Sequence record: ON631220.1
Length of the DNA stretch: 64,000 bases
Reading direction: 5' to 3' (one strand)
The notes beneath the pieces were generated by a model. It was given only the letters and a program-made list of their open reading frames with translations, was not told where the DNA came from and made no database searches. A program made the position numbers and the translations under genes. Positions 2,575 through 60,739 of the stretch are shown piece after piece. Within the stretch, counting starts at the first letter, position 1, and each line of letters begins with the position of its first letter.

Positions 2575-3177
2575 ATGCAGCGCAATAATGACCCGCAGCA
2601 AGTAATCATGTCGATTGAGATGTACAATAGCCTACTGGCTATGGCTAATGATTCACCTCATTACACGACAAAACTTATCCAACGTCACGTGCGAAAGATG
2701 AATCCTTTTTTACAACCTGCACATCTAAAGAATGTCAGAACTAAGGAAGCTATTCGGTCCCAACGTATTCGTGAAGCTCGGGCTTTCTTCGAAGCCAATC
2801 ATAGAAAAATTCTGTACGCAAAGGTTGATATGGGTAACTGTAAAAAAGGAGATGATCCGGTTTACTTCCCATGCATATCTGAACGTATTGCCAAGAATAG
2901 ACAACTAATCCAAGTTCGTCATGCCAATGAAGTTGGTTATGGACGGTGCATCCGGTTGGTAGAGGCTAAATATCTCACAACCATTATTCCTGATGGATAT
3001 ATCCAAGGAACTGGGCCGTATAAAAAATATCTTGTTAAAGAGAATGGTCCTTACGATATCCGTGAACAAGAAGAAAAACGTAAACAAGCTTTTTCGAGTG
3101 AGATAGCTAAGAAGTTTGAGTTCAAACATGATTCTTACGATATGGATAATCTCAAAAAGAATTATTATACACAATGA
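2575..3177 (+). CDS. Hypothetical protein, N-terminal domain paralogous to 28092..28475
   Basis: ORF with SD GGAG; the N-termini align visibly. Confidence 0.75.
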   Translation: MQRNNDPQQVIMSIEMYNSLLAMANDSPHYTTKLIQRHVRKMNPFLQPAHLKNVRTKEAIRSQRIREARAFFEANHRKILYAKVDMGNCKKGDDPVYFPCISERIAKNRQLIQVRHANEVGYGRCIRLVEAKYLTTIIPDGYIQGTGPYKKYLVKENGPYDIREQEEKRKQAFSSEIAKKFEFKHDSYDMDNLKKNYYTQ

Positions 3178-12428: not shown

Positions 12429-13028
12429 ATGAAAAAACGTACCGCTTATATCGATCGTGCTAAATTCCGAGATTTTCTAGCCGAGAAAAAAATTAGCGTA
12501 AGTAGCCGACAGTGGATTGAAAAGAGCCACCCAGATCATAAAGAATATTACAAGGCAATCCTAGATTACGTCGTATCTAATGTAAAATTCAAAGAAGAAC
12601 GTTATATTGAAAAGGCAAATGAGGTTATTATTAATGGGTGTATTCGATATCATCTACCCATTCACGCTCAACGTGCACTAACTGTAGTTGAAGAAGAATT
12701 CATTAATAATGCTAGTCTTCAATTTACTTATCTGAATGATAATGATACTAATATTGCCAATATTAACTTTGAAGAAGTTCTTGATGCACAAGTAACTGAG
12801 AATGAAACTGAACTAAGACAAAGTTGGGAATATGTCAATTGTGATATCAACCCATCAGAATACTTTATTGATGTTGTTGATGTACCAGAAGAACTAATTC
12901 TTCGTCTATCTGTATTCCGTTTTGTACACAGTATCAAGAAACTGGAAGTAAAGGATAAGTTAGATCTTGCCGATGTTGTAGGTAAAGATCTAGTTATTGA
13001 AGATGGTAACGTTAAGGTTGTAGAATGA
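12429..13028 (+). CDS. Hypothetical protein
   Basis: AGGA SD. Confidence 0.8.
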   Translation: MKKRTAYIDRAKFRDFLAEKKISVSSRQWIEKSHPDHKEYYKAILDYVVSNVKFKEERYIEKANEVIINGCIRYHLPIHAQRALTVVEEEFINNASLQFTYLNDNDTNIANINFEEVLDAQVTENETELRQSWEYVNCDINPSEYFIDVVDVPEELILRLSVFRFVHSIKKLEVKDKLDLADVVGKDLVIEDGNVKVVE

Positions 13029-13081: not shown

Positions 13082-13450
13082 GTGATGCAATGTTTAACAC
13101 ACGTAATGAAGTTAGTGGCCGTATTAAGTACGTTGTTATACGTATCAAACCCACTAGCTGCATCGTTGGTAGTTGACGAGAATTACTGTAATGGTGTTGC
13201 ACTTATAGCACATGCCACAGCAGAAGCACGTCAGCGTAAAACACCCATTTTACAATGGGAAGAAAACCTACGATCCCTAAAAGGGTACGGCGTGAAGAAC
13301 AAAGATAACGTTCTTTACAATGTTCTCCCAGCAGCAATTAAAGAGGTGCACGTTGTGTATTCACGTAGACAAAGCCCACGTGATGCATACGTTACATCAT
13401 TTAAAACCTGTATGGATAACAACTACGGTAAAGCTGTGGTTGTAAAATAA
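13082..13450 (+). CDS. Secreted two-cysteine helical protein (family of 26501..29358)
   Basis: Signal peptide ...SNPLAA, then ENYC...FKTC. Confidence 0.75.
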   Translation: MMQCLTHVMKLVAVLSTLLYVSNPLAASLVVDENYCNGVALIAHATAEARQRKTPILQWEENLRSLKGYGVKNKDNVLYNVLPAAIKEVHVVYSRRQSPRDAYVTSFKTCMDNNYGKAVVVK

Positions 13451-14850: not shown

Positions 14851-15759
14851 ATGCTAAAGGTAAAATCATTACTTACTGGCCATATTCTTCGAGCTACCTA
14901 TGATTGGTTTCTTGAGAATAACTTCAGAGATATTCTAATTGTAGCACATACTCAATTAGTACCTGATTTATCTGAGGTAGCTCTAAAGCATGCGAAAGAA
15001 GATCACACTATCACTTTCAATATCCATCCACGCTGTGCAAAGAATTTTTATATCAGTGACGAATATATCTCTTTCAATGTAACAGTAAATGGAGTTGGGG
15101 TCAGTATTAAACTTCCTCTTTATGCAGTATTGGGTGTAGTTACACCTATTGATGATAATTCTAACGCATTCTTTGAAATGCCGCTAGTAGATAGATATCT
15201 CAATGCAGATACTATTCGTGCAACATTAGAAGGAACTGTTAATAATGTAGTTGACAAAAACCCAGTATTAACTACCGTAGGTAATGTCACTGAGGTTAAT
15301 TTTAAAAATAAAGCCGATACCACTAATGGTAAGTTAGTTGTAAGGAATACATCTGAGAATGAGCATGATCAGATGATTGAAAGCGCCATTAACAGAGTAA
15401 CTGAATTTAGTAATCCAGAATTAGATGCACATATTAGAGTAGCGGTAACTGCAATTAAACAGAATGCACCAGAATTAATTATGGATTGGTGTGAGCGGGT
15501 TATTAATTGTACACGTAATGAAAACTATCAGGATAACATCAATGTACTTATGATGGAACTCCTCAGTTACCCTATTTCAAATGTGGTTAGTGAATCAACT
15601 GTGGACTCGGGTGATAATACATCTAATTCATTTGACAATGATGTAAATAAGATGGTTGAGGATTTCAATAATTCTTCCAATTCGCAGATTATTATTAATA
15701 AACCTTCTCGTCCTACTGGTCCACCAAAACTCACTGTTATTAAAGGTGGTAAGAAATGA
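14851..15759 (+). CDS. sspB: ClpXP adaptor SspB homologue
   Basis: ILRATYDWFLEN...ITFNIHPRC...ISFNV...LPLYAVL core; acidic linker; C-terminal PKLTVIK resembles the ClpX-binding LRVVK. Confidence 0.85.
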   Translation: MLKVKSLLTGHILRATYDWFLENNFRDILIVAHTQLVPDLSEVALKHAKEDHTITFNIHPRCAKNFYISDEYISFNVTVNGVGVSIKLPLYAVLGVVTPIDDNSNAFFEMPLVDRYLNADTIRATLEGTVNNVVDKNPVLTTVGNVTEVNFKNKADTTNGKLVVRNTSENEHDQMIESAINRVTEFSNPELDAHIRVAVTAIKQNAPELIMDWCERVINCTRNENYQDNINVLMMELLSYPISNVVSESTVDSGDNTSNSFDNDVNKMVEDFNNSSNSQIIINKPSRPTGPPKLTVIKGGKK

Positions 15760-16013
15760 ATGCAACTTTAGCAATTCTTTTTAGTAGTATCAGTATCGCT
15801 GGTTATCAAGCCAATGGTGCATCGCAGTCAACCACTGAGTTCTCTGACATGACTACTTGTTTTAGCGCGATTGAGCGTATTCAAAAACTAGCTAAAGCAA
15901 GTGCTATTCGTAATAATGTAGAGACTGTAAAAATCAGCGATGGTGTTCTATTACGTTATTTTTCTTCTAGTACCAGTAAAGTAGAACATACTCTAATCTG
16001 TGTAAATAAATAG
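15756..16013 (+). CDS. Small exported two-cysteine protein
   Basis: Hydrophobic N-terminus; EFSDMTTC...LICVNK. Confidence 0.7.
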   Translation: MNATLAILFSSISIAGYQANGASQSTTEFSDMTTCFSAIERIQKLAKASAIRNNVETVKISDGVLLRYFSSSTSKVEHTLICVNK

Positions 16014-25435: not shown

Positions 25436-26092
25436 ATGCTAATGAATGAAATTATCGATATTCTAGAAGGAGGGAAAGAGAATATTCTCTTAACTAACCA
25501 TCTAGGTAATGGCAAATATTCCAATGCGGGTAATGCAATGGCTGCATCATATGCCATTGCGGCACATACTGCTGTTGGTCAATTGCGAGATGGTTCAGGA
25601 AAACCTTACTGGCATCATTTATTACAAGTAGCTGAGATGGCGCAATTATTCGACCTATCTCACGCTGCTTATAAAGCAGCATGGTTACATGATGTAATTG
25701 AGGATACTGCTGTAACTGCTTCTGATCTAACTAAACTATTCTCAATCCCTGTTGTTAATTTAGTAACTGAACTAACAAATGTAACTTACGAAGGTAATCG
25801 TAAAACTAGGATTAGTTTACAACATGAAAGACTTTCTCGCATTTCATGGAGTGGTCAATCTCTTAAGTTACTAGATTCCATTTCAAACATGTGGTCGATT
25901 GTTAATGATAAGCCTGATTTTGCTGAACTGTATCTGACTGAGAAAGCTCAACTAATCAGTAAGTTAAATAATTGTCACCCCGCTATTAAAGATCTGGCTA
26001 TATCTGTTCTCTATGGCAGGTGTACTATGGTTGGTGGGGATGCACTAAAAGAATATAATAAACTATTTTCTGATAATGAAATTGTATGTTAA
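25436..26092 (+). CDS. HD-domain (p)ppGpp hydrolase-like protein (Mesh1/small alarmone hydrolase type)
   Basis: AH-x3-Q-x-R, PYWHHLLQVA, AWLHDVIEDT, VTELT and KLLDSISN motifs. Confidence 0.85.
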   Translation: MLMNEIIDILEGGKENILLTNHLGNGKYSNAGNAMAASYAIAAHTAVGQLRDGSGKPYWHHLLQVAEMAQLFDLSHAAYKAAWLHDVIEDTAVTASDLTKLFSIPVVNLVTELTNVTYEGNRKTRISLQHERLSRISWSGQSLKLLDSISNMWSIVNDKPDFAELYLTEKAQLISKLNNCHPAIKDLAISVLYGRCTMVGGDALKEYNKLFSDNEIVC

Positions 26093-26110
26093 AATAATTA
26101 CTTAATATAC

Positions 26111-26178
26111 ACCCTCCCTTCGGGGAGGGTTTTATTTATCTTTTTTTGTATTTAAACTATTTAAAAAGCTATATTACA
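26111..26178 (+). promoter_or_regulatory. Terminator (UUCG) + early promoter cassette
   Basis: accctccc-ttcg-gggagggt at 26111-26130; TATATTAC at 26170-26177. Confidence 0.85.
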
Positions 26179-26210
26179 AATATGAATTTAATAACCAAGA
26201 GGGCAATACA

Positions 26211-26474
26211 ATGACTGAACGTTTGAAATCCGTATGGTGCGCTTGCAGCTTACTGCGTGAACGCTGGAGACACATCCAAGACATTGCTGTCGGGGATGAA
26301 CATCATGTCATAGTAAAAAACGATATGCTGATGGTGTTTCGTGGTCAAGTACCGGTAGGTAGCATGTACCGGGGTGACAGTGACCCACTCATCTACGAGG
26401 GTGGTGCACTGGAAGAATTTACTAAAGTTGTATTGGATTTAGAATTCAATACTCGTGGTGAAACCAATAGTTAA
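26211..26474 (+). CDS. Hypothetical early protein
   Basis: GAGGG SD; first gene after the promoter. Confidence 0.8.
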   Translation: MTERLKSVWCACSLLRERWRHIQDIAVGDEHHVIVKNDMLMVFRGQVPVGSMYRGDSDPLIYEGGALEEFTKVVLDLEFNTRGETNS

Positions 26475-26500
26475 TAAAATTAATTTTGAGGTAATTCATT

Positions 26501-26908
26501 ATGAAATATGTAATTGCATTTATGTTGTCTATTGTAACTATCACTGCTAACTCGGCTGTCATGTACACTAATCGTGATTCATGCATCGAGTTTGTAAAAC
26601 AGGCAGATGAATTGTTTGTAAAAGGTGCATCTGTAACTGAAGTGCAAATGAAGACTTATGAAAGGATTCATTATATCCTTAATAACACTAAAGATCTAAA
26701 GATCAACCAGTCTAAAGTTGAAGAACTCACTGGTCTATTTTACCTATGGTCTAAGGTAGATAAAATGGCAATTGAGGCAAGTTTGCCACGTGCAACAAAT
26801 GCTGCTAAAGTCTATAAGACCACTCCTGAGAAATTCATCATTAATGGTTATTTCCAGCGTTGTGTAGCGGCAGGTGCGTTTGAAGCAAAACCACTTACTC
26901 TAAAATAA
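26501..26908 (+). CDS. Secreted two-cysteine helical protein
   Basis: Signal peptide ...ITANSA; RDSC...FQRCVAAG. Confidence 0.85.
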   Translation: MKYVIAFMLSIVTITANSAVMYTNRDSCIEFVKQADELFVKGASVTEVQMKTYERIHYILNNTKDLKINQSKVEELTGLFYLWSKVDKMAIEASLPRATNAAKVYKTTPEKFIINGYFQRCVAAGAFEAKPLTLK

Positions 26909-26920
26909 TGGAGGTACAAC

Positions 26921-27280
26921 ATGCTTAAGAATTGGCTATTATTCCTTTTCCTGCCAATCCTGTCCATTGCATGTCAGCCTGCCCACGCTGTAGAAGTGGG
27001 TATTACTAAGAAATCATGTAATGTGGCAGTAAATCTTTCACAAAAAGCAACTGAGCTTTATGATAAGAACCTATCCCAATTTGAGATAATGATGCAGTTA
27101 GACATGATCTCTCGTAAGGATATGGATGACTTGGAGTTCTATGCAGGTGCGGTATATGCCAAGTTAAACTTAGTTGATATTCGAGTAAATAAACGAAAAG
27201 GATTTACCAATGGAGCTATCCTAGATAGGTTAGCTGAAAATTGTGTTGAAGCAATTGGTACTAAATTTAACTTGGAGTAG
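26921..27280 (+). CDS. Secreted two-cysteine helical protein
   Basis: Signal peptide ...QPAHA; KKSC...AENCVEAIG. Confidence 0.85.
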   Translation: MLKNWLLFLFLPILSIACQPAHAVEVGITKKSCNVAVNLSQKATELYDKNLSQFEIMMQLDMISRKDMDDLEFYAGAVYAKLNLVDIRVNKRKGFTNGAILDRLAENCVEAIGTKFNLE

Positions 27281-27283
27281 ACT

Positions 27284-28078
27284 ATGATTAGTATCTATAT
27301 TGTCATTATGCTCATGGCTATGCTAGCTGCATTGACATGTGGTAATTTGGTAGATAGTTGGGTAAGGCCAGCTATTCTAAAATGGTTGAATGATGATGTT
27401 GCTATTCATTTCACCAAGGCCACCTGGATGGTTGGGGGAATCCCTAATGATGTTCCAGTGCAACTAGGTAAAGCTGTTTGGTTACCCAAATACGTGGGTG
27501 ATGGAATACGTCTTTACATTACGGCTGATGAAATAAAATTTGGATGGAATGGTAAAGAAAAAGATGCTTTAGCACGAGCCATTGTTGAAGTTATCTTTAT
27601 CGGTAAGAATCCAAATAGTAAACTTCTTGAAGTAAGTATTAAACCTATTTGGTTACACCCTTCTATCCAAAAAGAAAGTTTCTATTTAATGTTTGATTGG
27701 GAAAAGCTTTATACAAAAAATGAAGAGATGCGTATTTGTTGGAAGACAATACGTCACACTTTTTTCTATGGATTCCTAGGTTTGATATTTGGCGGTAGTG
27801 CCAATGCAGATAACCTTGTATTAACTGAACGTGGATGTGACCAATATGAAGCAATGGTGAGAACTATTGCATCTAAAGCTTATATTGGATTAGATCCAGT
27901 TATGGGTAGGGAATTCATTATTAATGATCCTGATATGTTAAATGCCCGTGAGAAAGCACAACGTAATACCCGTATCATTATCGATATGGTGGAAACTGGA
28001 CAAGAACCCAAAGACATTGCATTATGGATGAATACTCAATGTAAACAAGAAGCAGTGTCAAATTTAATCAAACAGTAA
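27284..28078 (+). CDS. Membrane protein fused in frame to a secreted two-cysteine module (possible internal start at 27728)
   Basis: N-terminal TM; internal signal peptide ...GGSANA; ERGC...NTQC. Confidence 0.7.
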   Translation: MISIYIVIMLMAMLAALTCGNLVDSWVRPAILKWLNDDVAIHFTKATWMVGGIPNDVPVQLGKAVWLPKYVGDGIRLYITADEIKFGWNGKEKDALARAIVEVIFIGKNPNSKLLEVSIKPIWLHPSIQKESFYLMFDWEKLYTKNEEMRICWKTIRHTFFYGFLGLIFGGSANADNLVLTERGCDQYEAMVRTIASKAYIGLDPVMGREFIINDPDMLNAREKAQRNTRIIIDMVETGQEPKDIALWMNTQCKQEAVSNLIKQ

Positions 28079-28091
28079 AAAAGGCATAGAT

Positions 28092-28475
28092 ATGAAAAGA
28101 AATTTTGAAGATGATCACGTGGTAATGGCAGTGGAAGTATATGAGAAACTGAAAGAAGCTGCTGCTTATTCATTACACTCTTCTGAAATTAGTAAGATCG
28201 AACGACATATGCGTAAGTTTAATCGTGTTCAACGCGATAAACATATTGAAAATATGCATATGGAAATGCTTGAGAAACGCGAGGCTATTAGAAAAGCAAA
28301 ATCTTTCTTTTCTCAAAATGCCGGTAAAATTGGTTGCGTAGTAGATAGGCTTGTCAAAGTATGTGAAGTGTATAAAATGGATAAGTCTATGGTGGTTGTT
28401 GAGTTTCTCCAACATAAATCTAAAATTAAAGTTCCAGTAAATCCTGAAAAAATTACTATTCTTACCATTAAATAA
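28092..28475 (+). CDS. Hypothetical protein, paralogue of 2575..3177
   Basis: VVMAVEVYEKL...IERHMRKFN...IRKAKSFF aligns with VIMSIEMYNSL...IQRHVRKMN...IREARAFF. Confidence 0.8.
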   Translation: MKRNFEDDHVVMAVEVYEKLKEAAAYSLHSSEISKIERHMRKFNRVQRDKHIENMHMEMLEKREAIRKAKSFFSQNAGKIGCVVDRLVKVCEVYKMDKSMVVVEFLQHKSKIKVPVNPEKITILTIK

Positions 28476-28492
28476 ATGAAGAAGGATTTAAA

Positions 28493-28948
28493 ATGAAAAA
28501 TGTAATTGCAGCAGCTTTCGCTGGTCTCATTGCCATTACCGGTATCATGTTCAATACCGCAATGGCTGAAATCAAGATTGGTAAAAAAGATGCTCAACTC
28601 ACTGTGCAGTCGTGTGCAATGGTTGAAACCATTACTAAACAAGCTGTATTTCGAATGAGTGAAGGTCATAGCGCAGATGAAGTTGGTGTGCTTATGCTCA
28701 ACAACTCTGCTAAACTCAAAGATGAGTTGGATACCAATAATTGGATTGCGTTAACATTCGTATTCAATAGTCTTAATAAAATCAATAATGACCTTAACAG
28801 TAAAGAGATCCATGATTATATCCGTAGTCAAGGTTACAATGTGACTACTCCTAATCTGGCAGCTTTTATCAGCGGGTATTATGGCAATTACTGCATGAAG
28901 CATATTGGTGAGAAATTCACTCACATGGTAATTGTTGAACTCATTTAA
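28493..28948 (+). CDS. Secreted two-cysteine helical protein
   Basis: Signal peptide ...NTAMA; VQSC...GNYCMKHIG. Confidence 0.85.
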   Translation: MKNVIAAAFAGLIAITGIMFNTAMAEIKIGKKDAQLTVQSCAMVETITKQAVFRMSEGHSADEVGVLMLNNSAKLKDELDTNNWIALTFVFNSLNKINNDLNSKEIHDYIRSQGYNVTTPNLAAFISGYYGNYCMKHIGEKFTHMVIVELI

Positions 28949-28980
28949 TTCATATCGAATACTTTCAAAAGGAAAATAGG

Positions 28981-29358
28981 ATGAAATACGTCTTCTCGCT
29001 CATTATCACTATGGTAGCAATGTCGGTTAATGCACAACCCGTAACCGTGTCATCTTGCTACGTGCTGCACAGCTTGGCAAAGAATATGGTTCAATTCTAC
29101 ACTAATGGCGGTGAGCCATTGGAGATGTATGCAATACTGCAAGATGAACTATCCATTGCCATAGATAAAAACCAGAGTGATAAGGCACTCGCTATTAATA
29201 TCGCATTGGATAATGTCGATGTAATATACCAAAATCTCACTGATCCCGCACTTAAGCTTTTGGCAAAGAGCGAGGGAAGTGATCTTGGTGAGATGCTGAC
29301 TGAAAAACTCAGTAATGGGTGTTTCAATATAGTCGGCGAGGAGTTGTATGATAACTAG
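28981..29358 (+). CDS. Secreted two-cysteine helical protein
   Basis: Signal peptide ...MSVNA; VSSC...SNGCFNIVG. Confidence 0.85.
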   Translation: MKYVFSLIITMVAMSVNAQPVTVSSCYVLHSLAKNMVQFYTNGGEPLEMYAILQDELSIAIDKNQSDKALAINIALDNVDVIYQNLTDPALKLLAKSEGSDLGEMLTEKLSNGCFNIVGEELYDN

Positions 29359-29587
29359 AATCATCCTAATTGTTGCATGGGTATGGGTAATCTCTCTTAT
29401 GGGAATGATTACGTATGTTCTTTATGATACGTATCAATTTCGTAAGAAATTAGAAATGCCTGTTGTAGAATGGGAAGATAAGGCGAAGGACACTCCTGTT
29501 AAGAAGTGTCCAGATGAAGTATTATTCGCTGAAGACCCAAAGGATGGCAAACTCAAAATGGGATGCCCTGAGAGTTATAAGAAATAA
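29348..29587 (+). CDS. Small membrane protein with two C-terminal cysteines
   Basis: GAGGAG SD; TM helix; KKCP...MGCP; terminator at 29590-29609. Confidence 0.75.
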   Translation: MITRIILIVAWVWVISLMGMITYVLYDTYQFRKKLEMPVVEWEDKAKDTPVKKCPDEVLFAEDPKDGKLKMGCPESYKK

Positions 29588-29669
29588 TTAGAGGACCTTC
29601 GGGTCCTCTTTTTAACCGACTGGACGGTTAAAACTAGGTGGGATAAATTAAACTATTTGAGGAAATCTA

Positions 29670-29777
29670 ATGCAACTTAGTAATGAACTTTTCTATGTGG
29701 GTATGGTAGCTGTATCAATGTCAATCGGTATGCTATTTAGCTATATTTATCACACTCATAAGAAAAAATATAAATAA
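29670..29777 (+). CDS. 35-aa membrane micro-protein, not in the ORF track
   Basis: GAGGA SD; [35 protein letters not shown]; terminator at 29787-29806. Confidence 0.7.
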
Positions 29778-29811
29778 AGTCATAAACCCTCTCCCAAAGG
29801 AGAGGGCTTTT

Positions 29812-43374: not shown

Positions 43375-43392
43375 TTTAAGATCTATATTACA
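43375..43392 (+). promoter_or_regulatory. Early promoter (AGATC-TATATTAC)
   Basis: TATATTAC at 43384-43391. Confidence 0.8.
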
Positions 43393-60517: not shown

Positions 60518-60739
60518 CTAGGGACATTTAAAAATATAAATCGAATGGTTATCTCTGTCGGCTATCTTCAGAGTATTCTCATTTCGAATAGTTTCAAGAG
60601 ACTTGTATTTATGCTCCAGCATATCCAGGTGAGAAATACATTGTCCCCTATTTTCAAATAGGATCTTACTCTCATTAGTCGAAGTGAAACCAAATAATCC
60701 AACTTTGATAGATAATACTAACATTATTACTGTATTCAT
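60518..60739 (-). CDS. Small exported two-cysteine protein, similar pattern to 15756..16013
   Basis: GAGGA SD before MNTVIM; LFENRGQC...IFKCP. Confidence 0.7.
   Translation of the reverse strand: MNTVIMLVLSIKVGLFGFTSTNESKILFENRGQCISHLDMLEHKYKSLETIRNENTLKIADRDNHSIYIFKCP

Follow-up and report, generated by a model that had tools for sequence, protein, structure and literature searches.

Predicted early operon of envelope-directed two-cysteine helical proteins in Pseudomonas phage OMKO1

The stretch of record ON631220.1 analyzed here (64,000 nucleotides; the window) is from Pseudomonas phage OMKO1, of the phiKZ species, and contains a run of small genes for which a first-pass annotation proposed early expression of a diversified set of exported two-cysteine paralogues. 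This raised the questions of whether the proteins form one family, whether they are expressed early and exported, and what they might do in the envelope of the infected cell. The ORFs at issue, at 26501 (gp247), 26921 (gp248), 27284 (gp249), 28493 (gp251), 28981 (gp252), and 13082 (gp229), were all present as described, and the operon ORFs correspond to phiKZ gp246.1 to gp253.1 (Table 1). Judged heuristically from signal and anchor segments, 7 of the 9 operon ORFs specify envelope-targeted products. Besides the family candidates, the operon includes gp246.1 and gp250, which have no signal, and gp253 and gp253.1, which have membrane anchors. In the diverged relative L002, gp246.1 was missing; the most conserved operon gene was gp253 (96% identity to L002) and the fastest evolving was gp250 (60%). 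The N-terminal 80 residues of gp250 were paralogous to the ORF at 2575-3177 (E 2e-9).

Table 1. Features of the operon and of the separately located gp229 gene
Feature	Position	Strand	Length	Description
Terminator hairpin, left boundary	26111..26130	+		8-bp GC-rich stem, dG -16.3, z -3.7, U-rich tail
Early-type (virion RNA polymerase) promoter	26141..26177	+		T-rich tract, then TATATTAC at 26170-26177
gp246.1	26211..26474	+	87 aa	No signal peptide (cytoplasmic); phrog_23594
gp247	26501..26908	+	135 aa	Heuristic signal peptide, Cys28 and Cys121; candidate member
gp248	26921..27280	+	119 aa	Probable lipoprotein, family prototype, Cys33-Cys108 pair
gp249	27284..28078	+	264 aa	Anchor, middle domain, internal signal-like segment, two-Cys C-terminal module
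gp249 N-terminal anchor	residues 1-23	+		From hydropathy
gp249 middle domain		+	about 130 aa	Between anchor and internal segment
gp249 internal signal-like segment	residues 158-176 (27755-27811)	+		From hydropathy and charge
gp249 C-terminal two-Cys module	residues 177-264 (27812-28075)	+		
gp250	28092..28475	+	127 aa	No signal peptide (cytoplasmic); outside family
gp251	28493..28948	+	151 aa	Signal peptide (heuristic), Cys41 and Cys134; family member
gp252	28981..29358	+	125 aa	Signal peptide (heuristic), Cys26 and Cys114; family member
gp253	29348..29587	+	79 aa	One N-terminal membrane anchor by hydropathy; charged C-terminal tail, two Cys
Terminator hairpin	29590..29609	+		dG -15.8, z -4.25, then U5
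gp253.1	29670..29777	+	35 aa	Single-pass membrane peptide; annotated in phiKZ
Second, more canonical terminator, right boundary	29787..29806	+		After gp253.1, before early promoter 29834
gp229	13082..13450	+	122 aa	Signal peptide (heuristic), Cys36 and Cys110; gp248-like predicted fold

The 8-mer TATATTAC of the proposed early promoter lies 33 nt upstream of the first operon ORF. Its extended context was found at seven further plus-strand sites in the window (14144, 22663, 23095, 29834, 32519, 43384, and 51918), and at six of the eight sites, 26170 included, an ORF starts 33 to 56 nt past the 8-mer; at 43384, there was no ORF start within 200 nt of it. The bare 8-mer was weakly enriched, with 15 matches against 8.3 expected. 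Early promoters of phiKZ are AT rich, with an extended -10 and a T-rich element upstream (PMC8244752), a description with which the context at 26170 agrees, in support of the original promoter call. On the left, the operon is bounded by a hairpin that ends the upstream unit, 3' of gp246 (HD-domain hydrolase), and agrees with the published phiKZ terminator motif (PMC10914365). The terminator called at 29590 was also recovered, and was followed by a second one beyond gp253.1. By its sequence, the operon thus has the layout of a phiKZ early transcription unit, with an AT-rich early promoter upstream and an intrinsic terminator downstream. The Churi homologue of gp248 was seen at 15 min post-infection in two published proteomic experiments.

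Signal peptides were called by a heuristic combining hydrophobicity and small residues, and by this heuristic, a hydrophobic segment with small residues at -1/-3 was present in all members and kept in their orthologues. The first-pass description needs correcting in two cases: the segment of gp248 looks like a lipoprotein signal, and that of gp249 is internal. In the six members, the first Cys was located 8 to 16 residues into the presumed mature chain, as first noted, and the second 10 to 17 residues from the C terminus. The letter motif proposed around the second Cys was exact in gp248, gp251, and gp252 but not in the other three. All 40 distinct sequences, drawn from every subgroup, kept the pair and lacked an intervening Cys. 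Spacing between the two cysteines was 74 to 75 in gp229-like and 72 to 75 in gp248-like proteins, with 12 to 13 and 11 to 13 residues, respectively, after the second Cys, apart from one gp248-like outlier at 5. Together with the structural models below, these features suggest that the family probably consists of exported, disulfide-stapled helical bundles.

For gp248, an invariant Cys preceded by small residues occurred where the hydrophobic segment ends in 10 of 12 orthologues. Because most orthologues share this lipobox-like arrangement, gp248 can be regarded as a probable lipoprotein. A small-residue site 5 residues downstream was conserved too, which leaves its route of processing ambiguous. 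The orthologues P0012 and P0013 had only a signal-peptidase-I type site.

Homology among the members was examined with decoy-controlled profiles from which signal peptides had been removed. A profile of mature gp248 orthologues detected gp251 (E 9.6e-5) and gp252 (E 5e-3), the best decoy scoring 0.45. Pairwise comparison with hhalign gave P values of 1.9e-6 for gp251-gp252, 7e-4 for gp248-gp251, and 5e-4 for gp248-gp252, against a decoy floor of ~2e-3; the gp248-gp251 alignment spanned the full length with both cysteines paired. The closest paralogue of gp252 was gp251, and phmmer matched gp252 to the L002 orthologue of gp251 with an E value of 1e-6. On these sequence comparisons, gp248, gp251, and gp252 are homologous.

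The remaining candidates were compared by structure. The AlphaFold model of gp248 was a five-helix bundle (pLDDT 92.3, pTM 0.82). It was matched by the BFVD model of the PS119XW gp229 orthologue, the identity of which was verified (TMq 0.80, rmsd 2.3, prob 1.00), by a 151-aa BFVD entry taken as gp251 from its length and accession series (TMq 0.76), and by a 264-aa entry taken as gp249 on the same grounds (85 columns, rmsd 1.6 Å, TMq 0.72); gp252 had no separate entry among these BFVD matches. Profile and hhalign comparisons of gp229 and the gp249 C-terminal module with gp248 gave no sequence similarity beyond the cysteines, and a register test of gp229 against gp248 without the Cys columns was not significant (z = 1.4). 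By predicted fold, gp229 is linked to gp248, and the gp249 C-terminal module and gp251 very probably are. In gp249, 5 of the 17 residues ahead of the internal segment are K or R. For gp247, five helices were predicted at a pLDDT of 54.5, this low-confidence model returned only itself in Foldseek, and phmmer and hhalign could not connect it by sequence with gp248, gp251, or gp252; a likely orthologue was found in PS119XW-type phages (hhalign P 1.4e-4). It may be a family member. The shared-fold check suggested by the first-pass annotation came out positive for the gp229 orthologue and the 151- and 264-aa entries; the gp247 model was too poor for such a comparison. Its single paralogue family is accordingly narrowed to three members joined by sequence, with gp229 and very probably the gp249 module joined by predicted fold and gp247 as a possible member; the placement of gp229 as a sixth member stands on fold and cysteine geometry but not on sequence similarity. 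Its description of a fixed scaffold under high divergence fits the invariant Cys pair and the shared predicted fold.

A family search returned 7 matches among 1.84 billion proteins, and the family had no match in Pfam, NCBIfam, PADLOC, or the PDB sequence families. Among the records searched, the carriers were exclusively Pseudomonas phiKZ-like phages. Orthologues of gp248 occurred in 16 records of Pseudomonas jumbo phages other than phiKZ. Outside the phiKZ species, gp251, gp252, and gp249 could be detected in just one relative (80-85%). The gp248/gp229 orthologues (phiPA3 gp303, 201phi2-1 gp367 and gp343, and those of Phabio, PS119XW, Psa21, D6, and RVTF4) had 25 to 53% identity and TM values up to 0.93, and usually adjoined further two-Cys ORFs with signal peptides. 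Over 160 kb scanned, all ORFs of this type fell in the window. In published TnSeq data, all operon genes and gp229 tolerated insertions (insertion sites: 4 and 8 for gp246.1, 6 and 10 for gp253.1), and a viable, sequenced insertion exists for gp252. This dispensability is unspecific, because about 70% of phiKZ genes are likewise dispensable. The operon genes were under purifying selection similar to that on neighboring genes. In the literature searched, the genes are named only where the gp248 homologue was detected by proteomics and in the TnSeq tables, in keeping with the earlier remark that the family has no assigned function.

Our tentative reading, to which we give somewhat less than an even chance, is that of an early envelope operon, the paralogues of which each bind or inhibit a component of the envelope or of an incoming phage and thereby block later infection or attack. 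The domain shared by gp248, gp251, gp252, the gp249 C-terminal module, gp229, and possibly gp247 would be a five-helix bundle of about 90 to 125 residues, with one invariant Cys where helix 1 begins and another where the last helix ends, placed for a stapling disulfide. Shortly after infection, Sec would export the proteins, which would then be oxidized in the periplasm. Lipidated gp248 would be sent to the outer membrane, the gp249 module would be displayed on the periplasmic side of the inner membrane while the ~130-residue domain of gp249 stayed in the cytoplasm, and the other paralogues would be soluble in the periplasm. Each would bind a different component stoichiometrically, and the altered surface or periplasm of the infected cell would block later infection or envelope-directed attack, as with T4 Spackle and T5 Llp. 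The binder role is suggested by size, fold, and analogy, and the span of paralogue pI from 4.2 to 9.4 fits different partners. Superinfection exclusion by phiKZ-like phages was not documented in the literature searched, and phiKZ and phiPA3 have been seen together in a single infected cell, which speaks against a strong and immediate block between this pair. A part in forming the early infection vesicle, described as surrounding the injected genome, seems least likely, because the vesicle would then precede synthesis of the operon proteins.

Other readings were weighed against this one. The proteins may not be one functional family at all but unrelated or anciently related exported proteins with unrelated roles, made alike by general constraints. 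The lack of a sequence link from gp247, gp229, and the gp249 module to the three core members is what this would predict, as are the register test and the unreliable gp247 model. We consider it unlikely given the agreement of the other models with the confident gp248 model (TMq 0.72 to 0.80, rmsd 1.6 to 2.3 Å), the match of the gp248-like and gp229-like sets in Cys spacing and tail length, and the confinement of such ORFs, over the 160 kb scanned, to the window. Saposin-like lipid binding, in which the bundle would open, bind or extract lipids, LPS, or lipoprotein acyl chains instead of proteins, and remodel host membranes (through vesiculation, permeability, or membrane supply), draws on the Foldseek result that the best well-aligned PDB fold matches of the gp248 model were four, from human saposins A and C (TMq 0.52 to 0.56, TMt 0.59 to 0.64, rmsd 3.0 to 3.6 Å, prob 0.44 to 0.84). 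Saposins, like these proteins, have cysteines on both the first and the last helix. However, the E values of 0.7 to 1.5 were not significant, small helical bundles match easily, the operon proteins have two cysteines rather than the defining six and no Pfam saposin domain match, and the literature searched contained no saposin-like phage periplasmic protein. This reading appears quite unlikely, and very unlikely in the form of a phage-borne, minimal, single-disulfide saposin-like fold for periplasmic handling of lipid, LPS, or lipoprotein acyl chains. If true, it would mean that nucleus-forming jumbo phages have a program for remodeling membranes, in which gp249 is the membrane-tethered form joined to a domain in the cytoplasm. 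A real saposin likeness would also be a surprise for a periplasmic fold.

Two further possibilities concern the integrity of the cell. As immunity-like protectors, the paralogues would neutralize host enzymes or the periplasm-acting weapons of other bacteria (type VI effectors, pyocins, or cell wall hydrolases) and keep the cell intact until lysis. Early, small, predicted to be exported, multi-paralogue, varied in charge, restricted to Pseudomonas phages, and dispensable in pure culture, they have a suitable profile, but no known immunity protein or lysozyme inhibitor was matched in PDB, Pfam, NCBIfam, or PADLOC, and we know of no precedent in phages; we judge the idea improbable. The chance is slighter still that gp249 and the soluble paralogues are lysis-timing or envelope sensors that relay periplasmic events inward, in the manner of the T4 antiholin system. 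The predicted topology of gp249, with the family module outside and the ~130-residue domain inside, would suit such a relay, as would cotranscription of the membrane peptides gp253 and gp253.1. That topology is, however, deduced from charge bias, there was no holin or antiholin similarity, and the lysis-cassette paper places the phiKZ cassette (spanin genes 141 and 141.1) elsewhere in the genome and does not mention the operon genes.

Work on nucleus-forming jumbo phages has focused on the cytoplasm (nucleus shell, protein import, spindle, and anti-defense), and the words periplasm and secreted are absent from a 2025 Annual Review on these phages. The operon predicts that phiKZ-like phages, beyond their cytoplasmic program, also direct an early protein set to the cell envelope, built on a small, predicted disulfide-stapled helical scaffold seen nowhere else among the 1.84 billion proteins. 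With OMKO1 and phiKZ relatives in therapeutic use, early envelope proteins could matter for interference between the phages of a cocktail and for the surface properties of infected cells. Being small, confidently modeled, and individually dispensable, the family is well suited to structural and localization studies.

Among known systems, the homologues in phiPA3, 201phi2-1, Phabio, PS119XW, Psa21, D6, and RVTF4 are all uncharacterized, and other phiKZ-like phages carry arrays of one to three adjacent genes, whereas the phiKZ/OMKO1 operon is larger. Saposins, closed bundles of similar size, gave the best though non-significant solved-structure matches to the gp248 model; they have three disulfides and belong to another kingdom and compartment. 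The receptor-blocking outer-membrane lipoproteins of the T5 Llp/Cor type are small, early, and equipped with a Cys pair, as is gp248, which probably shares their location; they returned no sequence or fold match to gp248, and a lipobox occurs in gp248 but not in the other paralogues. T4 Spackle (gp61.3) is an early gene product with a cleaved export signal that acts in superinfection exclusion in the periplasm, a helical bundle of 75 mature residues in which one disulfide ties the C-terminal end to helix 1, and binds its target, the gp5 tail lysozyme, stoichiometrically (PMC7677548). Membership in the Spackle family was rejected: Spackle did not appear among the 50 best PDB hits of the gp248 model in Foldseek, and a PDB profile search gave one unrelated match (E 0.16), so that neither a sequence nor a fold relationship was found; the likeness would lie in a possible mode of action. 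Spackle is encoded by a single gene, whereas phiKZ has a multi-paralogue set of 88 to 126 residues that includes a putative lipoprotein and a membrane-tethered form. As early, small, putatively exported, predicted helical bundles with a single Cys pair, the gp248-like proteins nevertheless find their closest analogue, in architecture only, in Spackle.

The ORFs and signals picked out in the first-pass annotation are real. By comparison with the phiKZ RefSeq record, the proposed family of exported, helical two-Cys paralogues corresponds to phiKZ gp247, gp248, gp249, gp251 and gp252, with gp229 as the ORF at 13082. The window, which covers the opening 64 kb of Pseudomonas phage OMKO1, was matched at 95 to 100% by 47 phiKZ-species genomes. 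All operon ORFs and gp229 are annotated solely as hypothetical; a PHROGs search assigned each gene to a separate group of unknown function, no informative family was found for the operon genes or gp229 in Pfam, NCBIfam or PADLOC, and a sequence profile search of the PDB returned nothing.

Genes and transcription signals of the early operon, with gp229
Feature	Position	Strand	Basis or remark
Terminator hairpin, strong	26111-26130	+	U-tail; ends upstream unit
Early-type promoter	26170	+	T-rich tract and TATATTAC; 33 nt before gp246.1
gp246.1	26211	+	ORF, phiKZ RefSeq comparison
gp247	26501	+	ORF, phiKZ RefSeq comparison
gp248	26921	+	ORF, phiKZ RefSeq comparison
gp249	27284	+	ORF, phiKZ RefSeq comparison
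gp250	28092-28475	+	ORF, phiKZ RefSeq comparison
gp251	28493	+	ORF, phiKZ RefSeq comparison
gp252	28981	+	ORF, phiKZ RefSeq comparison
gp253	29348-29587	+	ORF, phiKZ RefSeq comparison
Hairpin, credible terminator	29590-29609	+	dG -15.8, z -4.25, then U5
gp253.1 (35 aa)	29670	+	ORF, phiKZ RefSeq comparison
Second, canonical terminator	29787-29806	+	After gp253.1 ORF, before next early promoter (29834)
gp229	13082	+	ORF, outside operon

The mature region of gp248, modeled with AlphaFold from an eight-sequence alignment (pLDDT 92.3, pTM 0.82), was predicted to form five helices, with a short strand at either end of the chain. When this model was compared with predicted viral structures using Foldseek, its own orthologues were recovered at a query-normalized TM (TMq) of 0.80 to 0.93, and the gp229 orthologue of jumbo phage PS119XW, whose identity was verified, at TMq 0.80 with an rmsd of 2.3 Å. 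Also matched were two BFVD entries of one accession series, A0A494W8Q1 and A0A494WC04, namely, a 151-aa protein (TMq 0.76) and a 264-aa protein (TMq 0.72, rmsd 1.6 Å over 85 columns), presumably gp251 and gp249, respectively, with which they agree in length. Further matches of 150 to 161 aa came from 201phi2-1, Phabio and Psa21. For gp247, modeling gave five helices at low confidence (pLDDT 54.5), and the only structure recovered with this model was gp247 itself, at an rmsd of 15 Å; gp247 was therefore left as a candidate member.

By raw pairwise alignment, gp251 and gp252 were the sole linked pair. An early iterative HMM search with full-length sequences was set aside because it was possibly driven by the signal peptides, and it was redone with mature regions. 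A profile built from the mature regions of nine gp248 orthologues, signal peptides removed, detected gp251 (E 9.6e-5) and gp252 (E 5e-3), with the best reversed-sequence decoy at 0.45. Since reversed-self comparisons of these helical proteins equaled weak true matches in hhalign, acceptance was limited to P below about 1e-3, the best non-self decoy lying at about 2e-3. The links obtained were gp251 with gp252 (P 1.9e-6), gp247 with its likely orthologue PS119XW 4803 (P 1.4e-4), and the gp248 family with gp252 (P 5e-4) and with gp251 (P 7e-4), the last over the full length with both Cys aligned. Neither the profile nor the hhalign comparisons connected gp247, gp229 or the C-terminal two-Cys module of gp249 to the gp248 group. 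In a Cys-anchored register test of gp248-like versus gp229-like sequences, z was 3.1 when the Cys columns were kept and 1.4 when they were left out, and as significance was lost without these columns, no sequence homology is claimed between the two. The sequence comparisons and predicted models support a structural family of gp248, gp251, gp252 and gp229, which, judging from the models, very probably includes the gp249 module. The shared scaffold proposed earlier is supported for these members, with gp247 kept as a candidate.

If cleavage falls where presumed, mature chains carry their first family Cys at 8 to 16 residues and their second 10 to 17 residues before the end. The Cys pair, for which a fixed scaffold had been claimed from the sequence alone, was present in 40/40 distinct sequences, always with no Cys between the two. 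The Cys spacing is 72 to 75 in gp248-like versus 74 to 75 in gp229-like proteins, and the tail after the second Cys is 11 to 13 (one outlier, 5) versus 12 to 13. The exact C-terminal letter motif originally described was present in gp248, gp251 and gp252 only, and not in the remaining members. In a scan of 160 kb, made up of the window together with 1-50 kb and 170-216 kb of phiKZ, all small ORFs that combine a signal peptide and a terminal Cys pair fell in the window. Two other, smaller proteins with signal peptides (15756-16013, + strand; 60518-60739, - strand; mature length 53 to 62 aa) each have a Cys at about residue 12 to 14 and another at the very C terminus; the two are alike (alignment z = 4.8) and unlike the gp248 group.

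Export signals were judged by hydropathy and a small-residue heuristic, which flagged gp247, gp248, gp249, gp251, gp252, gp253 and gp229 among approximately 16 such ORFs in the window. All members for which a Sec signal had been proposed were included, although the signal of gp249 is internal and that of gp248 lipoprotein-like. In 9/9 genomic gp248 orthologues, a Cys closes the hydrophobic core, with small residues before it and a conserved short linker after it, and this invariance indicates gp248 as a predicted lipoprotein; two database orthologues are without that Cys and retain a signal-peptidase-I type site alone. In gp249, the signal-like segment spans residues 158 to 176 with five K/R in the preceding 17 residues, and the 4-residue tail of the N-terminal anchor is uncharged, a charge pattern that favors a cytoplasmic middle domain and an outward-facing two-Cys module. 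Together with gp253 and gp253.1, predicted single-pass membrane proteins, the signal-bearing ORFs bring the predicted envelope-targeted products to seven of the nine encoded by the operon. The charged C-terminal tail of gp253 carries two Cys-Pro motifs, and gp253 is the best-conserved operon gene, with 96% identity to the diverged relative L002 versus 60 to 86% for the others. The first 80 residues of gp250 (cytoplasmic), which matches phrog_18482, are common to a 200-aa ORF at 2575-3177 (E 2e-9) and, by this sequence match, are an N-terminal module that two early genes share.

The early promoter and terminator thought to delimit the operon held up, the former by a context shared with seven other sites and the latter by its hairpin stability. 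The bare 8-mer TATATTAC is mildly enriched in the window (15 versus 8.3 expected). Its long context, a T-run and AAA-rich spacer before the 8-mer, is common to eight + strand sites (14144, 22663, 23095, 26170, 29834, 32519, 43384 and 51918), usually directly after a GC-rich terminator hairpin, and at 6/8 of them an ORF starts 33 to 56 nt past the 8-mer. This extended context fits the published phiKZ early promoters, described as AT-rich sequences that combine an extended -10 with a T-rich element farther upstream (PMC8244752), and the early units of the window can be mapped directly from the eight promoter-like sites. Independent timing evidence for early expression comes from Churi, whose gp248 homologue was detected 15 min postinfection in two proteomic experiments. 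Upstream of the operon, gp246 (25436-26092) encodes a phosphohydrolase with an HD_4 domain (Pfam E 7e-12); in the phiPA3 record its homologue, gene 301, is labeled similar to GTP pyrophosphokinase. The neighborhood is conserved, as the HD gene lies just upstream of a gp248-like gene in phiKZ, phiPA3 and PS119XW/HPP-Temi. The small first operon gene, gp246.1, is variable, being missing from L002, where approximately 130 nt separate the HD gene from gp247 (L002 1861-1994 versus window 26092-26501).

Orthologues of gp248 and gp229 were each found in 16 other Pseudomonas jumbo-phage records, including phiPA3 (gp303, gp269), 201phi2-1 (gp367, gp343), Phabio, PS119XW, HPP-Temi, D6 and RVTF4. Detection of gp251, gp252 and gp249 was confined to phiKZ-species genomes and L002 (80 to 85% identity), which keeps the operon, apart from gp246.1, and every cysteine. 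A combined gp248, gp251 and gp252 profile gave seven matches among 1.84 billion representatives, all from this phage group, and word-indexed protein searches found nothing beyond close relatives. Among entries for partial Klebsiella pneumoniae proteins (210- to 414-bp contigs) are many fragments with 85 to 91% identity to gp247, gp248, gp249, gp251 and gp252; their probable source is a diverged phiKZ-like phage whose reads entered those assemblies, and not Klebsiella itself. Unusually fast diversification found no support: dN versus L002 was similar to that of neighboring genes and dN/dS was ≤0.23 where computable, with dS saturated, giving no sign of exceptional diversification. In the published phiKZ TnSeq tables, each operon gene has insertion sites, 4 to 15 in one table and 8 to 33 in the other, and gp229 has 11 and 21; a viable, sequenced Tn insertion exists in orf252, and the orf184-304 region is described as largely nonessential. 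Directly upstream of gp229, the unannotated gp228 (12429-13028) had 0 transposon sites in one table and only 13 reads in the second, which sets it apart from every neighboring gene, and it appears to confer fitness.

For phiKZ-like phages, a literature search found no study on exported proteins or on superinfection exclusion; where a core-genome paper names gp248 and gp249, these are gene numbers of phage RAY and not the phiKZ genes. Tentatively, and at somewhat less than an even chance, the family may consist of envelope-acting binders or inhibitors that alter the periplasm or surface of the infected cell, in exclusion or protection. Immunity-like protection, lysis or signal sensing, and the absence of any common function among the members are competing explanations. 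A saposin-like lipid role, a further rival, would accord with the best solved-structure matches to the gp248 model, human saposins A and C (TM 0.52 to 0.64, rmsd 3.0 to 3.6 Å, probability up to 0.84), but the E value was about 0.7, and the six-Cys signature and Pfam saposin domains are missing from the gp248 family.

For envelope-acting binders or inhibitors, the closest known thing in kind is T4 Spackle, an early, periplasmic, 75-residue helical bundle with one disulfide joining the first helix to the C-terminal end, which acts via stoichiometric binding of the tail lysozyme (PMC7677548). Judged by the PDB sequence profile search and the top 50 Foldseek matches in the PDB, Spackle is neither a sequence nor a fold relative of the gp248 family. 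For gp248 alone, a second analogue is the group of small, early-made lipoproteins of the outer membrane to which T5 Llp belongs.
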